A stretch of DNA of 63,968 bases, filler included, from Lenisia limosa (taxonomy: Eukaryota; Protista; Breviatea): NCBI GenBank assembly GCA_001655205.1. It is 14 parts of 14 records of this genome, joined end to end, with 100 filler letters (N's around TTAATTAATTAA, not from the genome) between each part and the next. Parts side by side here need not be neighbours in the genome. Positions count along the whole stretch, not along the records: positions 22,096 to 36,432 come from LPNZ01011212.1; 13 more parts are not named here. One strand, written 5' to 3'. The translations under genes were made by a program, and so were the position numbers. Positions 21,951 through 36,532 of the stretch are shown here, one piece after another. Numbering within the stretch: the first letter of the stretch is position 1; the number at the start of each line of letters is the position of its first letter. The notes beneath the pieces are model-generated. The model worked only from the letters and a program-made list of their open reading frames with translations, searched no databases and was not told the origin of the DNA.

Positions 21951-22196
21951 TGTGAGGCATGTATAGCAATGAGAAATAAGAAATAAGGCTGTATCNNNNN
22001 NNNNNNNNNNNNNNNNNNNNNNNNNNNNNNNNNNNNNNNTTAATTAATTAANNNNNNNNNNNNNNNNNNNNNNNNNNNNNNNNNNNNNNNNNNNNTTGCC
22101 AAAGTGGTTTTTCTGATTTAAAGATTCTCATATCATAGATCCCAGGCAAGGCAAAATGGAGAGGGGAGGAAGAAGCAGCAACACCCCCAGAAACCT

Positions 22197-25100
22197 GAAT
22201 TTAATCATACGAGCTCTCATTTCAACAACATCGGTGAAGTGAGCGGGAGACCTTGATGTTGTTAATGTAAGTAATGCAATGCTCTAGAAGGCAAATAACA
22301 CTACACATGATGAAAATGATCATTTCAATCAAACAACCCAGCAACGCCAATATGCCCTACCAGAGTCTCTCCGCTACAGCGCCGGACCTCGGGAAAATTC
22401 TTGGGATGACAGAGAAATCATTAATCTGTTCTCCCCATTGTCTGCGGATGTTATGTGAAATGTGGGATTGCAAATATGAATTTTAAAGCAAGGATACCCC
22501 CCCCCCCACGCAGCTCCTCCTCCAAGGAAGTTCTCTTTTTGGGCGTCAGTGAGGTCCTTGATGGTCTCCATGGGGTCGAAGACGTAGTAGTCTTCCCTGT
22601 AGTGTAAGAAAGGAATGGCCCATTTCCGTAAATAGAAGAACCGTTAGGACTAAGGTCCCGTCTGAGTAATATACTATTGAGATGAGAAACAAACGTATTA
22701 ATTGAGAAAATAGCGAGAAATTCCGTCTTTTTCGGACCAGTGAAGACCAAGACCAAATAATAATAAAACTACACCCCTCCTCACCAGACATCCAGGAGAA
22801 GATAATGCTGGTCCTGGGGGTCCGGCCGATGCTGGTCAAGATACCAGTGGCATGACGAAATGCTACGGTACCCTGCTTCCAGAGCCTACGGAGAGGGTAA
22901 ATCGCATGCGGGAAGCAAGTGGAAATTATCGGAAGTGGATGACTTGAAAACGATCAATGAAATTTGTCAGTGTGAAGAGTCAGAATACCCCCCCCCCCAC
23001 TCTCTTAATATTTGCAGGGTCACGCCAGGCATGGACCACGACGTCGTCAGAGAGTCCGATGTCTTTCGAAAATCCGTCACCCCAAATTACGACGTTGCTG
23101 TTGGTGGAGGCGAAGGACGCGGATTGAGCCAGGAACCAGCGGTAGAGCTGGGGGGGGGGGGGNNNNNNNNNNNNNNNNNNNNNNNNNNNNNNNNNNNNNN
23201 NNNNNNNNNNNNNNNNNNNNNNNNNNNNNNNNNNNNNNNNNNNNNNNNNNNNNNNNNNNNNNNNNNNNNNNTCTGTTGGCTGACAACACACAAGGGTATA
23301 ACAACAAAACAAAAAAGCCCAAGCCGGGTGGGGGGGAATATTAATTTCTCAATTTCACAGAGGCTAACTATTAATACCTATTAAATCACATCATATCTCA
23401 TATCATATATCATATACTACAATCAATTATCTCCTAAAGCATGATGGTGTTGACGGCTTCGGCCAGATACCGCATTTCGTAGTTACTCGCTAGCCTACCT
23501 CCTCAGCTGAGCTGAAATTGTTGTCTTTCATCCACTTGGCAATTTCCTCATTTTCAGTCCAACACGCTGGGGGGGGGGGGGGGGNNNNNNNNNNNNNNNN
23601 NNNNNNNNNNNNNNNNNNNNNNNNNNNNNNNNNNNNNNNNNNNNNNNNNNNNNNNNNNNNNNNNNNNNNNNNNNNNNNNNNNNNNNNNNNNNNNNACAAG
23701 AGATATCCTCTCCCTCTTACCCTTAACCACTTCGTCTCCTCCGATGTGGAACCACCCTGAAGAAAACAGCTGGCTGACTTCCTCTACAGGGGTCAGAAGA
23801 GGGGGTGTTGGAGAAAAAAACAGCCAAGATAATCAACGACATTTCGCAGTTACATGTATATTAAAGCAATATCCTGATTTCCATCTTCAACTCAATACCC
23901 CACGAATGATAGCCTTCATGATCGGAATGGTCCTCTTATCGGCAGGATTGAGCGGGATGTTAGGGAGTCGCGTGAGACGCTGGGGGCACTTTGCTGTGAT
24001 ACCCGGGTACCCCGTGCCCCATGACGCGGCGTGGCCTGATGGGTGAGGGATCACTTCGATTCGAAACCAGACAGTGTAGATTTATAGCCGAATCCATCCA
24101 CACCATCACTTTTAAAAGATATAATATAGAACAAATCCACTCATCATTTGGTTAATCATATTAAAACCACCAAATACCTGGGGTGTCAATTTCGGGGAGG
24201 ACCATGAGCCCAAGGGAGTTGGCGAAGTCAATAATCTCAGTGATCTGAAGTTGTGATTAAATTTTGCTGATAGAACAGAAGAGAAACAGAAGGGAAAAGA
24301 AGAGAAAACGAAGCGCAAAACCCACCTGTTTTTGGGTGTAAATAGCCTCGGGGGCATATGCACCCGCAGTCATATTGGGATACGAACGGATTTCGAGGGG
24401 CCAACTCTCGGCATCAACAAGATGCAAGTGCAGGACGTTATACTTCGACGCAGACATGCCCGTGATAACAGTCTGGGGGAGTAAGAATGGAGATTTATGA
24501 AAAATTAAGAAACCCAAAATCAATACTGTTGACTATCCACACACAAAGGGTTGAAAACAACAAAAACAAGCAAATCCCAGGCTAAAGCGAAGCCGTCCAC
24601 ACCATCACGCTTACAAGAGATATGCATATGAATTATTATTAATTCACTCAATCATTTGCCTTACAACTCTGTGTGTAAAGTTTTCTGCGTGCCCCCAAAC
24701 CTTAATAGAATCCAAAGAGAGGAAGTGACGAGACACATCAAGAAGCACCTCTCTGTGGGGGTGACATCATGAACTTGTATGCATATGATATTTCAAAATT
24801 GCCCACATCATCTTCCAAAAAAAGGGCTGAATACCCCAATAATTCTCAATAAATATGAAGGTCTTTTTCAAACCAGATGGGACCTAGTTCCACCCGGGTA
24901 CCTCCAGGGGAACCGGGGGGAATCCACAACATTGACGGGGGCGTTGATGACGTGGTATGTCTTAGTGGCGCTGTCGTATTGCATAAGTTGCGCCAGGGAC
25001 TGGGGGTGGGGATAAGAAAAATGGGATCCCCCTCTCCTCTCAAAAAACCCGCCATTGCACGAGGAGTCCCCAGATGAACATACTTTGCATGCATGCATGG

Positions 25101-26663
25101 CACCCCAGATGGTACCTGCCTTGACGGTCACTTCCTTGTTCGAAATATCCAAGGCGTAGCTGAGGGGTGGGAGGGGGAGGGGTCAATGGGTATTTCAACT
25201 CTATTCGATCAACTTTTCAAAATGCATAATAAGGTTTATGTGTTAAATATACAGTGAGCGGGATAAGTCTTGACCGATTTGCAATAGGAATTCCCAAGGA
25301 AAATCTGTCAAGACTTATCCGTTCACTGTATCATATCATATGTCATATCATTGCTTAAATACAATTGCTCCCTTCTCCCTTGCTCGACACTTTGACTAGC
25401 CATCCTTTATTCGTCTTCCCCAAAATTATTTTACCGCCAACCTTTCGTCTACCCCAAAACTATTCTACCGCCAACCTTTCGTCTACCCCAAANNNNNNNN
25501 NNNNNNNNNNNNNNNNNNNNNNNNNNNNNNNNNNNNNNNNNNNNNNNNNNNNNNNNNNNNNNNNNNNNNNNNNNNNNNNNNNNNNNNNNNNNNNNNNNNN
25601 NNNNNNNNNNNNNNNNNNNNNNNNNNNNNNNNNNNNNNNNNNNNNNNNNNNNNNNNNNNNNNNNNNNNNNNNNNNNNNNNNNNNNNNNNNNNNNNNNNNN
25701 NNNNNNNNNNNNNNNNGACCTTGAAGACGGTATCCTGCGAGTCTTGGATGTGGAAGAGGAGGGGGAGTGCGCCGCCATCGCCAACGGGCTGGGGGAAGAA
25801 GACATACTTCTGGTACCTGGTATGTCACATTACGACTTCGCTGTGATAATGGAAGTAAATGATGTTATGATCATGGATTGATAAGGTAAATTGAACAATG
25901 ATGAAGTAAAACCCTATTCTAACTCATATTGTGTAGTATATCAGCCTTCAACAAACTCTCTGTTAGCCTACTTGTTTAAGAAGCTTGAAAGAACGGCAGA
26001 CTTCGGGAAAGAGGGCTTGAAAGCCGTGATAGAAACAGTGTATTCTGATTGCGGTAAGAAGAAGGGTATACTGAGGGCATTTATTCTGACGGAAGAAGGA
26101 TGCAAGTCTTTCTTCAAGAATATAATAATTATCTATCAATTTAGCTTTTTTTTTTTTTTTTTTNNNNNNNNNNNNNNNNNNNNNNNNNNNNNNNNNNNNN
26201 NNNNNNNNNNNNNNNNNNNNNNNNNNNNNNNNNNNNNNNNNNACTCATACTATCAAAATGTCGACAACAAACAAAAGGCTAACTTGCATCAATCCTTGTC
26301 AAAGAAACACGACTCTGTAAATAATATGATATTAAAATATTGCCCAATCTGTCGAGAAATTGGTTTGATGCGAGTGAATATTACAAGGCAACACCACTCC
26401 ATTTTCACGCAATTATAAAGGATTAAGGATTCATACCCTTTTATTTCCCTCTCATTTAATCATGCGTGCAGTAATCATAAGGCCTACGGTGGGACTTGGA
26501 AAGAGTTGTTGGATGCGGGATGATCGTGGCATTGTCAAGTTCGTCCGCAATAACGAAGGCCAAAACCTAATTTTCCGTGTTATTTATGTTTACAGTGCGT
26601 ACAGAACGCTAAGAAATAAGCAAAGAGACCCACCAGGCAGAGAATGAAGGCAAAAATCTTCAT
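22197..26663 (-). CDS. HEX: Beta-N-acetylhexosaminidase (GH20) with signal peptide
   Basis: Signal MKIFAFILCLVLAFVIA; motifs DSPRFPW, LLDVSRHF, NVLHLHLVDAESWP, GHAASW, WFHIGGDEV, CHWYLD and QWGEQINDFSVIPRIFPRSGAVAERLW in GH20 order. Confidence 0.95.
24473..24700 (-). repeat. 228-nt intron built entirely of family H (5') plus family A (3')
   Basis: GTTTGGGG-GCACGCAGAAA...GCGTGATGGTGTGGACGGCTTCG...CCTGGGATTTG...CATAAATCTCCATTCTTACTCCCCCAG between two GH20 exons. Confidence 0.9.
25252..25328. mobile_element. Family T MITE with TA TSD
   Basis: TA|CAGTGAGCGGGATAAGTCTTGAC ... GTCAAGACTTATCCGTTCACTG|TA. Confidence 0.85.
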
Positions 26664-27147
26664 TGTCCAAAACTACAAATTCAAACGTAGCTCTGTGACT
26701 CTCTGTGTTGTAATCTGCTATTAGTTGACCAACTGCTTCAGGGTTTTTTTTTTACTTTCCGCAACTTATATAGAGGTTTGCTGCTTTCAACCCCCAGGAA
26801 TTTCTCGTTTTTTTTAGAAAGAGAGAAGAAAAAAACGAAAAAAACAGAGAAAGGAATTGTAAGAGAGTAATAATATACGAGTGGAGAGCAATAGCAGGGC
26901 TTAGGAAACTCGTTAACCAATTCCCCTTTGTTGGCACAATGGCACCAGACGCTACTGGGGTGCACTGTTTGCGCCACAATGAACTACAAGATGATTTAGT
27001 GAATTCAATTCTGAGAAACAGCATCTGTCGCGATTTTCTGAGGCCTTATGGCATCACACAAGTGGAAACCGTGAGCCTCTGCCGTTTCTGTTCTTATTAC
27101 CTCAATTTAGGCCATTAAACTGATCACCCTCTACGGAATAATCAGTC

Positions 27148-30100
27148 TCCGCGACAGATTTGGAGCAGAACCGTTGAGCCTCAAAGACATCAAGGGTGTT
27201 ATCGGTTAGCGCCGTCATGGCTCTGGTCGTCTTATCTCTTAAGAATACGACCTACACGTTGAAGATGAGAAAGCGGTACAGGCGGAAGCTGCGCAGGAAC
27301 GTGAGACGAAGCCGGAGCAGGCGGTCGTGAAAAGACGTTACAAACGCTCTTCGTCAACACCAGTGCAGCGTCCTCGTCCCTCGTCTGCATGGCGACTTGG
27401 TGACCAGGTTTGGTGCAGGGAGTGGATGTGTTTTTGTTGAGTTATTGGCCTTAATTATGGAGGCTTGGAGAAGATTTAGAGTGATTCGAAGCGTCTAAAA
27501 ATGAAGCGTTTTTCAAGTTATCTATAAAAGATATTCCCTTTGTTGTAAAATCTGACGAGTACAGAGACAATACGTCCACACTTCAGTTGTAGAGAAGCCC
27601 CATGATCAAATTATTGGTATGTTAGAGCAATGTGTCAGAATTTCAGAAATAACCTTTAGTGGATAAACACAGTGCCGCTCGACACAAATTATATGTTAAC
27701 CCATATATCTAGTGAGTATTGATCATATGACCGACTTTCAAGTCGAAATGATGAACGAAGATAACACGAGGGTTTATCCCGAGTGTATCAGAGTATCATT
27801 GAGACTTGTCGGTCAATTATCATACGAGTGGATATGAGGTATCATATCACTGCGTGGAAAATGATAGTTCACACGTGTGAAAATGATCCAGAAAGTGATA
27901 TGATATAATATATTATTCTGTTGGCCTTGTTCACGAGCATTCGCTACCCCGCTGTGTATTGTTTATGAACTTACATTTTATTTTAAATCAAATATTGGCT
28001 TAATTCAGGGAAAACAATGGTCTCTTTATTGCCCTAAATTCCTCTTCGTACTATGGAAGATATTCCACCGAAAAGCAAGCAAGTTATATGTAGCGTTATG
28101 ACATCAATACACACTTCTTCCCTTTCATTTCATTTTCTTCAAATAGCATTTGCCACATCTCCACCTACGTCAACCTTTCTAATGCCCCCCCCCAGGACAC
28201 CGCTACATCCATGCTCCTCCTGCAAGCCCATCAATGAAGCAGACATACCCGCAGTGGTGGCAGAAAAAGAACAACGGTTAGCCATGATGTTGAGGGTTGT
28301 CTGATAAACAGCAACTTGAGATAGCCGAAGATTTGTTGAAGTGCCTTCTAAAGCAATGGGAATGATTGGTCATAAACTGGAACCTTACACCACCATGATT
28401 GATACACATAGCTTCGGTCCCCCAATCCCCCCGAACTCAGCGGAAAGAGCAACACGAACCAACACACGAGATCTTGAGATCTACTGAATCTGAGTTTGAG
28501 TCCTGCCAGCCTATTTCAGCCACATCTTTCGCTTCACGTTCCCATTCACCTGCCGCATGCGGTATGTCAGGATTGGGTTTTGGAAACAAATTGTCTTGGC
28601 TTGAAAGACTCCCACAAAATTATATTTCATTGTGAGTTTCATACCCCTTTTATCTTCTTCCCATTTTTTTTCTCTGTGTTTTTTAGACGGTACAATTTGT
28701 GGATTCCCAATGTATAACTATCATAGAGCATCTCTGTATTGAATATATGGACCCGCTAAAAGGATTCAATATTCTTACTCCCCAGAAGAAGAAGAGGAAG
28801 TCGGCACAGGCATTGGGTCAACATGGCATCCGGAGCTGCGAGCCTCTCAGAAAAAAGACGCAGTGGAGAAAAGCCGGGCCAGGCTTAACGATGCTGTTTA
28901 CGGCGGACCAAGGCTTGCTTATACCAGTGGGGGACTGGATTTGTATTTTATAATAAGATGAAATATAAGCAAGCAAGTGGGGTGGTAAGAAAGGATTGCA
29001 TGTGAATCATTCAACCCACCCAATAATGTATAATTCTGCTATTTACTCTCAGGTCCCGAGGATATCGCGAGACATACAAAGTGTTGTGAGGTACCCCATG
29101 AACCAGCTGTACGTGAAACCCACCCNNNNNNNNNNATATATGGACCCGCTAAAACGATTCAATATTCTTACCCCCCAGAAGAAGAAGAGGAAGTCGGCAC
29201 GGGCATCGGGTCAACATGGCATCAGGAGCTGCGAGCCTCTCAGAAAAAAGACGCAGTGGAGAAAAGCCGGGCCAGGCTTAACGANNNNNNNNNNNNNNNN
29301 NNNNNNNNNNNNNNNNNNNNNNNNNNNNNNNNNNNNNNNNNNNNNNNNNNNNNNNNNNNNNNNNNNNNNNNNNNNNNNNNNNNNNNNNNNNNNNNNNNNN
29401 NNNNNNNNNNNNNNNNNNNNNNNNNNNNNNNNNNNNNNNNNNNNNNNNNNNNNNNNNNNNNNNNNNNNNNNNNNNNNNNNNNNNNNNNNNNNNNNNNNNN
29501 NNNNNNNNNNNNNNNNNNNNNNNNNNNNNNNNNNNNNNNNNNNNNCCCACCAAGAAAACAACAGCCCATGTAGGTGAACATTACCTTTTCATCAATCAAT
29601 ATCCGTTTTTAATGTGATAGTTTGCGTGACTTAGGCCTGAATGTAGAATGATGAGATCTTTTGNNNNNNNNNNACCAAGAAAACAACAGCCCATGTAGGA
29701 GAACATTACCTTTTCATCAATCAATATTCGTTTTTAATGTGATAGTTTGCGTGACTTAGGCCTGAATGTAGAATGATGAGATCTTTTGTAAATAAATAAA
29801 TTTTGAAGAGTTAATTAGTTTATATACTGGCCAAGACTCCTTGCCCCTCCAATCGCATCAGAACCCATCAATTCACGGTTTAGCAAGAGAAGAGTCCAGC
29901 CGAAGCCTGCTGCCCGAAAAACGGGTCACTTCCCCGCGGCCGCAACCCCCCATCTATGTAAAAATCCATCGCCNNNNNNNNNNACAATTCACGGTTTAGC
30001 AAGAGAAGAGTCCAGCCGAAGCCTGCTGCCCCCCGAGCCGAAAAACGGGTCACTTCCCCGCGGCCGCAACCCCCCATCTATGTAAAAATCCATCGCCNNN

Positions 30101-30678
30101 NNNNNNNAGTTGCACGTGACCGCTCCGCGTGGCTTAAGGCCCAGAGAAGCAGCAATGCCAAAGTGGAGCCCCCTGTCGGCTCCGAGCCTGTTCTTCCAAC
30201 CCGATCCGTGCCGACNNNNNNNNNNATGATGACCACAAATCCTCCACTTTCGCGTCACGCACACGCTCATCCTCGCCAAAATCAATCATTGCGCCGTTGG
30301 TTGCACGTGACCGCTCCGCGTGGCTTAAGGCCCAGAGAAGCAGCACTGCCAAAGTGGAGCCCCCTGTCGGCTCCGAGCCTGTTCTTCCAACCCGATCCGT
30401 GCCGACTCATTCCGCCGAGGTACTTCCGGTGAACATTCTGAAAACCGCCGCCGAGGCTAGTATTCTGAATGACGTGTCGTCGCCCGTGCCCCCCGTTATG
30501 GTAAGTACTTCCTTATTAGGCAGTTACACTTATTTTTTGTTTGACACCCCAGGTTGAAACGCTTTCAAAAACGGACATCTCCCCGCGGCCAAAGCCAATT
30601 ATTCCTGAAATTCCACAATCCCCTCCTCCTAAGTCCACCCCTGCAGCTCCAGCAACTACTACTTCAGAATCTACAGTG
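27148..30678 (+). CDS. Multi-exon hypothetical Pro/Ser-rich protein
   Basis: GT-AG bounded exons such as LRDRFGAEPLSLKDIKGVI|EYDLHVEDEKAVQ and VETLSKTDISPRPKPIIPEIPQSPPP; frames not fully resolved. Confidence 0.45.
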
Positions 30679-31555
30679 GTGGGGATATCGCTTTTATAAT
30701 AGTATTTATTATATCCGTTATCCCTTGATCTAGTATGAATCTTACTCAGTTCTGTTACGAAATTAGAAACCTGAAAGTGAGCCTGCCGCCCATGGTCCGG
30801 CAGCCCTCCTCCGAGCCCTGCGGTCACAAACCGCCAAAACTGCGGAGGCGCCACGTGAGCAGCCGAAGGAATCTGCAAAGTATTGGGGTGCTATCTTTCT
30901 GCAAAAAGGGGGGGGGGGGGNNNNNNNNNNATTTTTAAGGCGGCAAGTTTATTTTAGAATCATGATCTTTTTAAAAGAAACATGCCTTGTTCAGATATCT
31001 TATTGAAGTATGTGCACCTTTTTTATCACCTTTTTCAGTACAAATCTTACGTACAATTAATACATTGTAATTAATAGTTGAAATTTGAAATTATATTGTC
31101 TAAAAAGAGGTTCTGGTTACGAAATGTCCCACTTCGAAATTCCCATTTAATTGTAGAGCCCTCTAAACACACCTACTCATTTTGACATTCGCAATATCAA
31201 TACCTCTTTTCCCATTGAATGCCACTCAGGCTCACGAGCTGGGCTTTTGACTATGGCAACTTTGATAGAGACCCACTCCAGGTCGAATCGTAGGTACTTT
31301 CTTTTTGTTTTTTGGAACTGTGTTTTGTTATTTAGGTTGTATTTTTTATTATTATTTTGTATTTTAAGATTACCATGTACTTTTATCCTTTGAGTATCTG
31401 TGGTGACCCTTGTAATAAACAACCTTTTTATGTTCACAAGAAATTTATTTCTCAGATTTCCTTACATATTTCCGTTAAGCAATTACACCTCCCCCCCCNN
31501 NNNNNNNNTCTTCCGGTGAACATTCTGAAAACCGCCGCCGAGGCTAGTATTCTGC
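28735..31555. other. Unmerged near-identical overlaps flanking 10-N gaps (probable allelic haplotypes)
   Basis: The same 60-200 bp appears on both sides of 10-N gaps near 29125, 29664, 29974, 30098 and 30216, and 31509 repeats 30423; copies differ by a few SNPs or indels. Confidence 0.75.
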
Positions 31556-31977
31556 GGCTAAATTTGATGATAATTCACAATTTCTAACTGCACGTTAAAC
31601 GATATCGTTATTGTTACCAAACACTTCCTGATAATTCCTGAGCATTTTTATGTGATAAGTCCTGTAAGACTGTATCTTGAACATTTTATGAACTATTTGG
31701 GACGTAATATATGAAAATGATGGGATCATGCATGCTCAGTGTTCAAATCTGGACACTGTGCAGGCCAATCCATCAGTTAATATTGGACATTATCAAAAAT
31801 ATATCTTTTACACAGCTAAACAGTTAGAATACGGATGAAAAGTGGCAACGATAGAAATTACACGGAACTTATTTTTGCCGTGTGCTTTGGGGGGCTATCC
31901 TGTTGAAACATTGATTTTTTAATTGGCACATGCTAAACAACTAATTTCAATTTTTATGAAACCAACTTGATACAAAA

Positions 31978-32142
31978 TTGGGCGAATCTGGTGTCACACC
32001 GACCTCCGAAGTTGATATGACAGAAAAATTGGAAGATACTTGGTCTAAGATACCTTCATTTGCAATTAAAGATCTAATCGACTCCATGCCACGTCGTCGC
32101 CAGGCCATTATCAACTCAAATGGTGCCCCACCAAATATTAGA
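31978..32142 (+). pseudogene. Tc1/mariner transposase C-terminal remnant
   Basis: LEDTWSKIPSFAIKDLIDSMPRRRQAIINSNGAP followed, after a 1-nt frameshift, by TKY*, matching the Tc1 end motif LIDSMPRR..AVI...G..TKY. Confidence 0.8.
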
Positions 32143-32907
32143 TTTTTGGAATTTATATTGCCTATTTTCCATTATTTTCAAATACACATTTTATTTATTT
32201 TGGCCAGAGGTTAAATAACCTGTCAATTATCACCTTTGAAAGCTGTGGACGTAAACTGTAAAACCTTTTTTGCGCAAAATGCCGTTTACTCAAAATGAAT
32301 AAAATTGCGAACAGTTTTATAAAAGTACTTAGTGCCATTACTTATCTCACGCACTGTATTTATATTTGGAAGATCATCTTAAGATGAATTATATAACCCA
32401 ATACTCAATAGTGTATGGATAGGATATATATCTATTCAGTATTGGAGAAAATCCACTGATACAAATAGAAAAGCAACTTATCAAATTTAGGAAACCTCAT
32501 TGTTTTCTAACATTTAGATATTTATAAACCAAACTGCACCGATGTCTCTGAGTGAATCAAGTTTGGCAGATAAGAGAGATATTGAATTGGACGAGGTTTG
32601 CAGTGTTAATCAAGAAAACTGATCATAAATTTCATTGTAAAAGAAGATATATTTATCCATAAAATTGAGACGACTCTCTACAATCATATATGAATGATAC
32701 TTCATCACAGTCACTATGGTGTATTCAGTATTCTTGATTTATGTATTTTCAGCAAATTGAGATGAAACTGGTAAACCTAACAAGGCCTAAGCTACACCCT
32801 AAAATGAGGCAGTATCCTTCAGTAAGGAGTTGTGGCCTTGTTATTTTGAAATAAAGTAGAAATTATTCCTTGAAAATAATCCCCAAGTTCTGTCCCAAAA
32901 TCAACAC

Positions 32908-35900
32908 AGAGCTCCACCCATTTACTGACCATGAGTATTTCAATGTTCGAGAAGGACATGAGAAGTACCATGGTTTTATAAGCTTGGCTCCTTTTGATAC
33001 AACTACAACAAAGTAAGCAGCCTTAAACAGATGTAAGAATTCTTCCTCCATTCTGCTTCCAGTTTCATTTTTGTGCCCGCGTCCACACCACAATATTATG
33101 TTACTCCATCTAAATAAGTGTATTTTTGATTTTAACCCACTGCACAGCCCATATTCCACCGATCCTAAAGTTATCTGTAAGCTGCGAAAGCAACCAGAAA
33201 TTTCACCAGACCCGAATGTGTCAGGCTTCACGCAAGCTAAGTTAAAGACACCTCTTGATATCCAGCCTGTTTCAAACTGTTCTCAAGTATTTGGGTTTAT
33301 TTTACGTATTATGGGTAATATTTACTTATTTTCATTTTGTTATTTGCTAATAACAATATTTTATATGTAACTGTATACGAAGTCTTTGATTTATATATGC
33401 ATTGTACATGTACATATCATATGTTCACATTTCTGAACAATAAAGCCTCCGCATTTTAATAAATAAAACAATGGTCTAAATACATAGATTTTATAAATCA
33501 TATTGTGAAATATATGTATGTGTATTTGATTAACCAATTAATACCTGTTTAGAGGGTCAAAATCCGTGCCGGGCTTCGCAACATGATTGATGTCGCATTG
33601 AGAAACAGAAGAAACGCCATGCAAAATATGAAGGAAAACAATCTTAGTAAGAGCGGTAGATCATGTCTTGATTTGAAATTCTGTAATTCCAACAAAAATT
33701 TATCATACTTCGTGATGTGTTGTGTTTTTGGGCAAATTTGTTGTGTCAACTCTGTAATAATGTTGTTCCGAATACAATTCTAACAACCTAATTTTTAGAT
33801 GGGGGTAAATCTATGGCGTTTCAAGACCACCCGCCACATATTCACCACATTGTCGTGGAGAGTGCTGGCAACAGAGTATGGATGGGATAATGATCAACCA
33901 TGAATCTGATTGTTGTTTAACACTTTAACTTTACCATCCAGAACTTTTGATTTGATTAATAAATACTTCAATAACTTAGATTAACAGCACAGTATAGTTT
34001 CACTATTCAGTCGATCTCTTTTGCATATCCGACTGTCATGGAAACTCTTAACAGCCTCCCAACTGGTTTTAGCGAGTTCAGATATCCTGTTGGTGATACC
34101 TTCTCAATTTTTATTGAAATGTTTATCGAATTATTGTAAAAAGCCTGCTACTAATCCAAACAGCTTCATCGTCTTCTGCATAGTAGCTCAACAGCAAACA
34201 GAATGGCTTCTGACACAGGCTACACGTACTTCCCTTATTCGTCACCTCCTGTTGGTTATTCAACATTTAAGGGCAAAGATGTAATATTTGGTGGTTTTAT
34301 CAGTGCTCCACTACTGCATTATTTACAGTGTAGAATCAATTCGGTCCGATAGATGAGTTAAATGAGCCATATGAAACAGTAAGACATTGGTTTTTCCAGT
34401 TAGCTAGCACGTTACTTACTTCCTAGAGTGTCAATTTTACAGAGCATTGCCCATATTCCTCCAATCCCAGCGCTCTTGGAAGTATGTCGCAACATCTTTT
34501 GAACAATAATAATGACACCTCAATAACCAACTTATATGATATATGGACGATTTAATATATATGTTACGCAATTACACTAATATTTTCCATTGATTATAAC
34601 CCCAAAAGGCTTAGGATACAAAACCTATGTGTCTCTCGCATATTCTACTGACCATCCGATCAACAAAGGCTATTTGCATGGAAGAGTAAATTTCAGAGTA
34701 TGTTTACTAGTGTAAAATTAAAATGGATCTAATACTCCTTATTTCAGCACTACGACTCAACAATGGGAGACTATGCACGTTTCAAAGGGGCTGCTACTTT
34801 TGTCAATAAATACGCATCGAAAAATTCTCCAGTCTACACGTTAACGGATGTAAATTGGGTCAATAGCATGTTTTGTATTTCATTTGATATTGCTTTGTTA
34901 ATAGGTTCTATTTGATTAATTAACATTAACCGATTTCTAGACAATTATTCTCAACTTATCAATGGAACTTTGCCAACTTTCCACAGGTAAATAAGTCACA
35001 CGTACCTACTAACAAATTCAATAAGTGCTGCACCAGTGAAGATATCGTGAGTGGGGAACTAAGTAATAATCATTTGAATATGAAAAGAATTTATCGAATT
35101 GACCCACAGCAAATTCACCTTCTAGAGACTCTCAGGTTATCTTGAATTCCTTACAAACCATTCCAAGGAGAATAACTACCCCATTGTCATCATTATTCAT
35201 GGAGATCATGGACCCCAAGTTGGACCTTCAATGGCAACTGACGCTGGTACGGATTCAGCTGATTAGAATTTCTATGTTATATTGATTGTACTTGCAATGA
35301 AAATTATTGACATTGAATCTTGATTTTTGTTCTAATATTGAATTTGGTTACGGCTTCCCTACAGTCCGAAAAAGACTGGTTAAATATTGACATTTATCGA
35401 TGATTTATATGATGCTTAGGTTTTTTGGGAAATCGTACAGTAGAATCTCAAATAACCTTACATCAAACCATTTTATTTTTTAATCACATTTTGTATTCGT
35501 GAGAAGATTTGTCCAAGAGTATTGTTAGGATATTGATTATCCTTAGGAATTTTTGACTACCACAATACGTTTATGTCTGTAACAATGTCCAATGGGATTC
35601 TCAGTGACTATCCAGAGATTAGGTATGTGAAGTATTGCCTCAATGTGAAATCATTGTGAATATATGATATATACTATATTACACACAGCGATACATTCCA
35701 TTATTCATATTCAAGATCTGCATTAGAGGTGAACACTATTCGAAGAGTTGGGATGATCGATATTACTCAAACCATCCGGCACCTTGCAGTGTACCCCTTC
35801 CGATTACACGACTCGTATCGTGATAACGACTTTTTGAATGTGAGTTGTGGTTGTACTTAAAATTGATAAAGCATCTTCCAGCACCCAAAACCAGGTTGTT

Positions 35901-36350
35901 GATAGATATATACAGCAGAAATACCCCCGCAGTTTAAAAGTAATTTCACATCATCTTAGCTTAGTCGCAGTTTGTTAACACCCATTGATATCCGTTACCC
36001 CTCACACTTGCCAACAACTGGTGAGATTGGATTGATGGTATTTTCTTCGATAAATGTATTTATCTTTTGGTTATTGTTATTAGGTTTTGAGACAATGTGT
36101 GAGAGCCTTGAAGGATCAATAAATGCAGTTAGAACTTACAAAACTGAGGTTGGCAGAGAAAATGGATACATCTTTGGTCACAAAGAGTCATAGTAATTTT
36201 GCATGTATTTGATTTCTTAATCAATTTGGTAAACCAACTCATTAATGTCATTCACTTTCACAGGAAGAAGTGTTAGCAATGGTACAGAGAGAGTACACTT
36301 TCTTGACAGTGATAGGGGAATTCCTGAAGTATCTCAATGAATTGTCATTG
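32908..36350 (+). CDS. AT-rich multi-exon gene (or genes) including an alkaline phosphatase/sulfatase (LtaS-like) domain
   Basis: Exon translations LHIYSVES, VNFTEHCPYSS, LGYKTY and YPIVIIIHGDHGP in the order of sulfatase-fold metal-binding motifs; short GT-AG introns, TACTAAC near 35001. Confidence 0.6.
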
Positions 36351-36532
36351 TAATATCAGAGTATACAATTTATTAAATTGACTGGTATTCTTTGTTGTCC
36401 TTATTCACATAGGTGACCATACATAACTGTGGNNNNNNNNNNNNNNNNNNNNNNNNNNNNNNNNNNNNNNNNNNNNTTAATTAATTAANNNNNNNNNNNN
36501 NNNNNNNNNNNNNNNNNNNNNNNNNNNNNNNN

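Follow-up and report, generated by a model that had tools for sequence, protein, structure and literature searches.

It has long been asked how genes gain introns; for bulk gains, Introners are the mechanism with the best support. The Introner-like elements of fungi are near-complete introns that carry all splice signals, lack target-site duplications (TSDs) and decay into ordinary-looking introns. Introners of Micromonas, Aureococcus, Symbiodinium, Acanthoeca and others are short repeats of a non-autonomous kind that constitute entire introns of unrelated genes; they are enriched in genes, have inverted ends in many families and reach as many as thousands of copies (Gozashti et al. 2022, PMC9860276); families with inverted ends and no TSD, and families that co-opt one splice site, are documented as well (PMC9860276). 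The introner elements of Amoebophrya have 8-20-nt inverted repeats that join the intron ends, and were read as similar to miniature transposable elements with inverted repeats (MITEs) with no evident transposase partner (Farhat et al. 2021, PMC7789003). In Euglenozoa (hemistasiid diplonemids, euglenids) introns have G-rich 5' ends and C-rich 3' ends with C-rich pyrimidine tracts, an origin by MITE-like insertion has been proposed for them, and in one diplonemid a variant U1 contains a stretch of C through which G-rich donors could be paired (Thakur et al. 2025, PMC12621601). Here we examine a repeat family with two modules, H and A, that occupies introns of a GH20 beta-hexosaminidase gene of the breviate Lenisia limosa (assembly GCA_001655205.1). 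The window, that is, the whole stretch of DNA analysed, is 63,968 nt long, and the gene lies on the minus strand of its piece 22096-36432 (LPNZ01011212.1), a draft scaffold in which N gaps adjoin homopolymer G or C tracts.

On balance we read the H/A family as an Introner-type, MITE-like repeat whose ends probably double as splice signals, and the 228-nt GH20 intron at 24473-24700 as a long copy carrying both modules. An Introner-type family is a known kind of system, not a new one. The GH20 locus offers a clean example, verified by RNA, of a single intron that is an abundant element in complete form; other introns, both of this gene and of an unrelated one, are formed or filled by shorter derivatives of that element, and the element's G- and C-rich inverted ends match the unusual splice-site style of the genome.

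The H/A repeats share with the described Introners the short non-autonomous form, the genic enrichment, the inverted ends and the high copy number listed above, and with some families the lack of a TSD (PMC9860276), but differ from them in having no known empty site, in one intron position held in common with a distant homologue, in the many copies that are fragments inside longer introns, and in homopolymer-like G- and C-run ends that also occur on introns without the element. The Amoebophrya elements are similar in their inverted repeats and in the missing transposase partner; their introns are mostly non-canonical with 3-5-nt direct repeats across the boundaries (PMC7789003), whereas all 12 introns compiled for the GH20 gene are GT..AG and no direct repeats were seen. 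Euglenozoan introns have the same G-rich and C-rich ends but mostly lack GT-AG and rely on end-to-end pairing (PMC12621601), while the intron borders here are canonical and G- and C-runs are often single and unpaired. Near-complete introns and the absence of a TSD are common to H/A and the fungal Introner-like elements, although the fungal families have neither inverted ends nor inverted copies and H/A has both. Tc1/mariner-derived MITEs (Stowaway-like), of which the neighbouring intron holds a classic example, have other ends and a TA duplication that is absent from H/A, and H/A is therefore not a MITE of that type.

A 228-nt intron composed of two repeat modules

The locus is represented in a study with two public runs, X1 from DNA and X2 from polyA RNA, and contigs from both were compared over a 6-kb stretch (22096-28090). 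A 1596-nt contig of the polyA RNA run skips 24473-24700 exactly, along with nine further introns of the GH20 gene. Read on the minus strand from 24700 to 24473, the skipped interval is GTTTGGGGGCAC ... CTTACTCCCCCAG, a GT..AG intron of 228 nt (the 3' end also given as CCATTCTTACTCCCCCAG), placed in phase 0 between ...LDSIK and TVITG... by the RNA joint 24472>24701 (CT..AC on the plus strand) and the reading frame. RNA contig pieces, their joints and translation define the 52-nt upstream exon (24701-24752, minus strand), which ends ...ATTAAG; the 147-nt downstream exon (24326-24472, minus strand, TVITGMSASKYNVLHLHLVDAESWPLE...) is also covered by the RNA contig and matches Pfam Glyco_hydro_20 (PF00728, E 2.5e-13). 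Joined, the exons form a single open frame in the standard code with all hallmarks of a GH20 beta-hexosaminidase, and none of the sampled words of the intron was present in the polyA RNA run. Given the RNA joint, the open frame and the absence of intron words from the RNA run, 24473-24700 is a real, efficiently removed phase-0 intron of the hexosaminidase gene. RNA joints gave ten of the 12 compiled introns, and the exon pieces of the contig gave the remaining two; with 12 introns over some 400 codons, the gene is far denser in introns than its homologues.

The intron divides into two halves. Module H (24585-24700, minus strand; nhmmer H profile 24699-24584, and alignments with other copies) starts with GTTTGGGGGCACGCAGAAA, has subterminal ACACACAGAG and contains its own most conserved part, the H core (GTGATGGTGTGGACGGCTTCG plus flanks; 24588-24622, minus strand), which was defined by the copies within the piece and by loose ends in the DNA run that mark repeat edges at 24588 and 24623. 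Module A (24473-24588, minus strand; nhmmer A profile 24588-24475) consists of a T-rich start, CCCTTTGTGTGTGG, CAACAG, TTGATTTTGGG, TTTCATAAA, CTTAC, C5 and AG, and aligns end to end with six other copies. The CTTAC (24481-24485, minus strand) lies 8 nt before the AG in a column that is conserved in the A alignment (family consensus TTTTAC), and by its sequence and place may serve as the branch point. A 43-aa open reading frame (ORF) inside the intron had no match in a protein search.

Copies in the GH20 gene and at a second locus

An exon ORF (P0001) led to the ENA contig ERZ3820729 NODE_4850 (L126), which matches the window at 100% identity and closes two of its N gaps. With the gaps filled, family sequence is present in four of the 12 introns, of 228, 289, 142 and 102 nt. 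The first holds H followed by A. The 289-nt intron (true length; 23148-23498 in the window) holds 37 nt, then an H copy inverted relative to the gene (23326-23471, plus strand; nhmmer E 4.4e-25) with an unused terminus GTGGGGGGG, then a second, sense A copy at its 3' end (23148-23329, minus strand, across the window's N gap 23163-23271 that L126 fills), which ends in C13 and AG. This A and that of the 228-nt intron align over about 115 nt, as far as the C-run and AG (BLAST E 4e-13). In the 142-nt intron (24036-24177) we found an older sense H copy (24079-24169, minus strand; nhmmer E 1.3e-17), which is judged diverged because DNA depth there equals the background. The 102-nt intron (true length; 23567-23720 with an N gap in the window, minus strand) is tentatively a reduced H-A copy, with a partial core GATATCTCTTGT, an A-like 3' part that gives weak BLAST matches to A, C15 and AG. 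Further copies of the H core itself lie at 24089-24123 (same orientation) and 23428-23461 (inverted), and part of A is repeated at 23273-23324, beside an N gap. Outside the GH20 gene, in the remaining 11 kb or so of the piece, the profiles of both modules matched nothing further at E<1, which places the recurrence within the gene above chance.

Summed DNA word depth in run X1, which is not the same as copy number, was 41,037 over 24496-24695 compared with 25-40 over exons and unique introns, about 1000-fold higher, and 17,195 over 23296-23495. On the 6-kb stretch 3,823 DNA contigs matched, of which 316 had >=99% identity. Repetition of the modules is clearly of thousand-fold order. In the consensus of loose ends of the DNA contigs, most copies have GCCAGATACAAC and then T17-18 after the H core, while A7 follows at one end. 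The H core bears what we take to be a partial resemblance to a whole-genome-amplification primer, which was set aside. A metagenome-wide scan with the H core returned 120 loci, every one a match of 20-24 nt attributable to chance, as was also the outcome of a viral scan.

The second locus was reached through an ORF in a different high-copy repeat of the piece (27783-27908) that matched two called proteins, both on contig NODE_977 of ERZ3820729 (L132/L133; 15,144 nt, coverage 23.7 compared with 23.8 for the GH20 contig). NODE_977 carries 8 H and 10 A copies (nhmmer E<0.01), 7 H and 9 A of them on one strand. The same strand has 16 GT+G-run motifs against 6-7 on the opposite strand, and it carries predicted exons of a cysteine-rich receptor-like protein (Ephrin_rec_like, 27.4 bits at a cut-off of 23.1), with weak EGF and PKD-like exon matches besides; the strand of this gene was taken from the predicted exons and the splice motifs. 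The gene is unrelated to GH20. Over both loci 20 of 23 copies are sense and 3 antisense (16 of 18 sense on NODE_977, 4 of 5 in the GH20 gene; two-sided binomial about 5e-4, in a small sample).

Two individual NODE_977 copies are unusual. The sole antisense H-only copy (L132, about 1120-1400) ends in a C-run followed by TCCCAT and has a direct repeat of about 23 nt (ACGYAGAACTTGCCTTATCGGGA) on both sides, far longer than a usual TSD. Within one predicted intron at L132 7940-8070, T22 occurs twice and the 3' end of A is partly duplicated in tandem, each unit reading ...CATAAATT.TCCAGTTTT and then a C-run, which suggests replication slippage or repeated insertion at the C-run.

The initial annotation, made from the sequence alone, had described the interval 24473-24700 as an intron built from H and then A; its coordinates and description are right, on the minus strand, and the transcript skips exactly this interval. 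It had further reported many copies of both modules in introns of unrelated genes on separate scaffolds, with H generally 5' and A generally 3'. The families are real in the GH20 and receptor-like genes (23 copies, about 1000-fold depth), which are the two loci viewed directly and for which the report stands, and the order holds wherever both modules occur. Its remark on a REJ-like gene with copies is one that the receptor-like gene fits. It had also named equally common, unoriented copies in intergenic DNA as a sign against an intron-forming element; the copies are strongly sense-biased, and none was found in the 11 kb outside the GH20 gene.

Structure of the H/A element

The consensus of module A reads TGCTGCAGAAGCGACTGGCC, TGGGCTTTGTTTG, a T/G-rich stretch, CCCTTGTGTGTTGTCAGCCAACAGAGTTGATTTTGGG, a T-run, GTTTCATAAATTTTCCAATTTTACTCC and then 5-14 C. 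In six A copies from the two genes the C-run is followed by AG or ACAG at an RNA-supported or predicted acceptor. The 5' end of the element overall is (G)TATGCTGGGGAGG, also read as (G)TATGCTGGGGAGGCACGCAGAAAGC, of which the 228-nt intron has the shortened form GTTTGGGGGCACGCAGAAA, and the 3' end is TTTTAC, a C-run of 5-14 and usually AG. On NODE_977 a 5' extension of A aligns with the 3' half of the H core, and a direct junction of H with A is present in one copy on NODE_977 as well as in the 228-nt intron. For these two reasons, H and A are best read from the alignments as two parts of one MITE-like element of about 230-260 nt with deletion derivatives, much as the initial annotation had guessed in proposing an element of about 230 nt, or two cooperating ones, now decaying into halves. 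The shorter forms comprise A that lacks the H body and has a variant core, and H that lacks the A body. One predicted in-frame intron of 165 nt on NODE_977 consists of GTAGGTTCTTC (11 nt) and one short-form element flush with the AG.

The ends of the 228-nt intron form a terminal inverted repeat of 9 nt. Its left arm, CCCCCAAAC on the plus strand, lies at 24692-24700 and its right arm, GTCTGGGGG on the plus strand, at 24471-24479, extending 2 nt into the downstream exon; 8 of the 9 positions are complementary. The short-form element of the 165-nt NODE_977 intron has a 16-nt inverted repeat with 75% complementarity. H and A also have subterminal inverted repeats in common (ACACACAAAG / CTCTGTGTGT). 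The inverted H copy of the 289-nt intron, at an end that is not used for splicing, still has GT+G7, which argues that the GT and G-run belong to the element.

These features lead us to propose the following mechanism. A very abundant non-autonomous MITE-like repeat would reside in genes, and its termini would be ready-made splicing signals, the 5' end supplying GT and a run of G, and the 3' end a branch-point-like motif, a C-rich pyrimidine tract and the acceptor; the G-rich and C-rich ends are imperfect inverted repeats of each other. A sense copy could be cut from the transcript by the ordinary GT-AG spliceosome, whereby an intron would be made or remodelled, as with Introner-type transposons. 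Under this proposal the element would transpose as DNA, its termini would themselves act as splice signals, and insertions into exons would create introns. As in Introners, the repeat is nearly the whole intron with its ends at or near the splice sites (H+A over 24473-24700, the six flush A copies and the 165-nt intron), many similar copies occur in unrelated genes, and sense copies are enriched in genes, the last two as judged from a small sample. As in MITEs, there are terminal inverted repeats; a TSD of fixed length was not found.

Creation or colonisation of introns

A number of observations weigh against the element as a maker of introns, and several bear on whether it carries complete splice sites at all. 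The branch-like motif and the C-run are intrinsic to A, but the AG that follows them in six copies is absent from three internal or antisense A copies in which the C-run is present. At the other end, the H consensus begins TATGCTGGGGAGGCACGCAGAAAGCTGTGT and the preceding G, which would give GTATG, is found in 2 of 4 informative copies. The element may therefore not carry complete splice sites. The terminal inverted repeats of both copies are short and G/C-rich, and each is weak singly, that of the 228-nt intron being dominated by G5 and C5. In an RNA fold of the 228-nt intron G5 pairs with C5, yet the stability is no better than that of shuffled sequences (z -1.0), and a structure-based reading of this intron was dropped. 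No TSD was found at the 228-nt intron beyond a 2-nt AG that is indistinguishable from a proto-splice site, in agreement with the initial annotation, which had seen no clear one; a possible TC duplication at the 165-nt NODE_977 intron is no better than chance. No autonomous partner with the same ends was found in the 30 kb at hand, no intron-less DNA form of an H/A site is listed in run X1, and no empty site or presence/absence polymorphism was found. Copies were observed directly at two loci only. On NODE_977 several of them are nested or in tandem inside long introns, beside a fragment of a Tc1-like MITE, and introns here are also plain transposon sinks.

The positions of the GH20 introns point the same way. 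They were compared with three GH20 homologues that have introns and were recognised by short ORFs on metagenome contigs (L127, L129, L131). The 228-nt intron (codon 75|76, phase 0) has exactly the place of an intron of L127 (4434-4504; 71 nt, GC..AG), a Tara contig, in an alignment that is ungapped from SRHF to LHLHL. A second GH20 intron, without H/A sequence (phase 2, in the Arg codon of PRFPWR), shares its position with an intron of L129 (126-180); both contigs are marine metagenome sequences of distant homologues. Each coincidence has a chance of a few percent under uniform placement, and the two together indicate that some of the intron positions, at least, are either old or proto-splice sites that are favoured. 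None of L127, L129 and L131 has the other three H/A introns, nor do they have most of the GH20 introns without H/A. Among the 150 best homologues only one ORF begins at the site of the 228-nt intron (P0031, on L127), annotated spliced proteins being uninformative there; the full-length homologue P0005 is intronless, and a protein search with P0001 returned only its self-match, with no close relative in that collection. In human HEXA the nearest intron lies three codons downstream of the site. The initial annotation's claim that the element seeded introns does not carry over to the 228-nt intron as it stood, since an ancient shared position was among the outcomes it had set against that claim, and position and phase here equal those of the L127 intron. 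Creation of this intron by insertion and take-over of an older intron are about equally likely. If the shared position is ancestral, the locus would show elements overwriting old introns, which bears on how introner censuses count gains.

The main rival to an intron-forming element is ordinary colonisation, in which the introns are older than the repeat, H/A sequences accumulate where they are tolerated, and the sense bias reflects selection against antisense decoy splice sites. The flush ends would then arise because the element prefers pre-existing G- and C-runs near splice sites, or because selection on splicing shaped the ends. The two shared positions, the nesting of copies next to other MITEs, an AG that is not intrinsic to the element and the lack of a TSD at exon borders are all consistent with this account, as are the C-runs on both sides of the A copy in the 289-nt intron. 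It sits poorly with the 228-nt intron, where a remnant of an older intron could be at most about 12 nt at the 5' side and about 9 nt at the 3' side, and with the acceptors in two genes at which six A copies end. For neutral intronic insertions, moreover, an orientation bias of 20:3 is strong, and the gene is far more intron-dense than its homologues. We regard colonisation as possible, although not as the probable explanation, and continue to favour the Introner-type element.

The splice-site style of the genome likewise speaks for colonisation in that G-run donors and C-run acceptors are general and occur without H/A. In the GH20 gene 6 of 16 runs of four or more G fall within the first 16 nt of introns (P 2e-4) and 7 of 25 runs of four or more C within the last 16 nt (P 4e-4), and the opposite arrangement was seen for none of these runs. 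Most G-run donors have no H behind them, and GT with a G-run and a C-run with AG are not special to H/A, a further point against an intron-forming element. The style itself, donors of GT with 5-13 G and then T and acceptors of 5-16 C and AG, was seen in at least three genes, mostly without recognisable H/A, with sites noted at 22442-23000, 23148-23720 and 28185-28197 and throughout L132. Two GH20 introns have only their first 19 nt in common (GT, G11, TATYCT). The N gaps of the scaffold coincide with these homopolymers, and L126 closes two of them. It is conceivable, if rather unlikely, that G- and C-runs even of introns without H/A are fossil inverted ends of this transposon lineage, that many introns were made by it, and that splicing adapted to them, for example through a C-rich U1. 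Were this link between the element's ends and the genome-wide G- and C-run sites true, a transposon would have shaped its host's splicing code.

Mode of transposition

Absence of a TSD, strong sense bias and ends flush with splice sites could also be produced at the RNA level, by excised H+A RNA that reverse-splices into transcripts and is copied back, a route that yields sense-only copies ending exactly in GT and AG and that has been proposed for fungal families without TSDs or inverted ends (PMC9860276). The H/A copies include three inverted ones, among them a full H inside an intron, as well as inverted terminal repeats, copies lacking GT or AG, and internal, nested and tandem partial copies. 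For these reasons insertion at the DNA level fits better, and we consider an RNA-level origin very improbable.

The homopolymer tracts raise the further alternative of retroposons resembling short interspersed elements (SINEs) that lie antisense to genes. A would end in an A-rich tail on the other strand, and the T-runs and splice-like ends would be by-products, as in the exonisation of antisense Alu elements. Most H copies are indeed preceded by about 18 A on the other strand and some H ends are followed by A-runs; the T17-18 and A7 at the loose ends of DNA contigs, the T22 tracts inside A copies of NODE_977 and the direct repeat of about 23 nt around one H-only copy could be accommodated as well. 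A polymerase III head of the kind that defines SINEs was not found, however: ARAGORN reported no tRNA gene in the 228-nt intron and Rfam no match at E<=1, which leaves no tRNA, 7SL or 5S-like head. The T-run is internal to the H+A unit, the terminal repeats are inverted and the 228-nt copy has no TSD. We give this alternative hardly any weight, and retain a MITE-like element that would move as DNA.

Other repeats and features of the piece

The next intron upstream in the GH20 gene contains an 83-nt near-perfect palindrome at 25250-25331 (TA, CAGTG...CACTG, TA), a Tc1/mariner-type MITE with a TA duplication. Its DNA depth is about 16,000 compared with a background of 30, and one of the NODE_977 introns contains a fragment from this family. 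This MITE shows that the genome hosts active MITE biology. An Rfam match to mir-9256 at 25247-25333 was sub-threshold (E 0.018) and is probably just the hairpin of the Tc1-like MITE. At 25410-25492 tandem 34-nt repeats with TTTTGGGG run into an N gap (25493-25716). The RNA contig holds 12 letters of this 34-nt repeat (GGGGTAGACGAA, gene strand) between exons, which indicates that the array and the gap enclose an exon or a portion of it.

A plus-strand gene in the same piece has a 581-nt intron at 27617-28197 (GTATGT...C9AG) that contains the other high-copy repeat (27720-27900, depth about 27,000). This repeat has two 41-aa ORFs, which correspond to called proteins 85-88% identical on NODE_977. 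DNA contigs join its edge at 27720 to the edge of the H core (23470, 24588), and at other places in the genome the two repeats are thus adjacent.

On the plus strand at 31978-32214 a 78-aa ORF resembles by eye the C-terminal end of a Tc1/mariner transposase (..DLIDSMPRRRQAII..), a resemblance left unconfirmed by Pfam, which gave no hit at E<=0.1. Between 28743 and 31554 there are several duplicates of 45-149 nt with 96-100% identity, split by 10-N joins, which look like stitched contig ends and not biology. One duplicated unit of 142 nt (28785-28926) is bounded by CTTACTCCCCAG and GTGGGGGAC and is exon-like.

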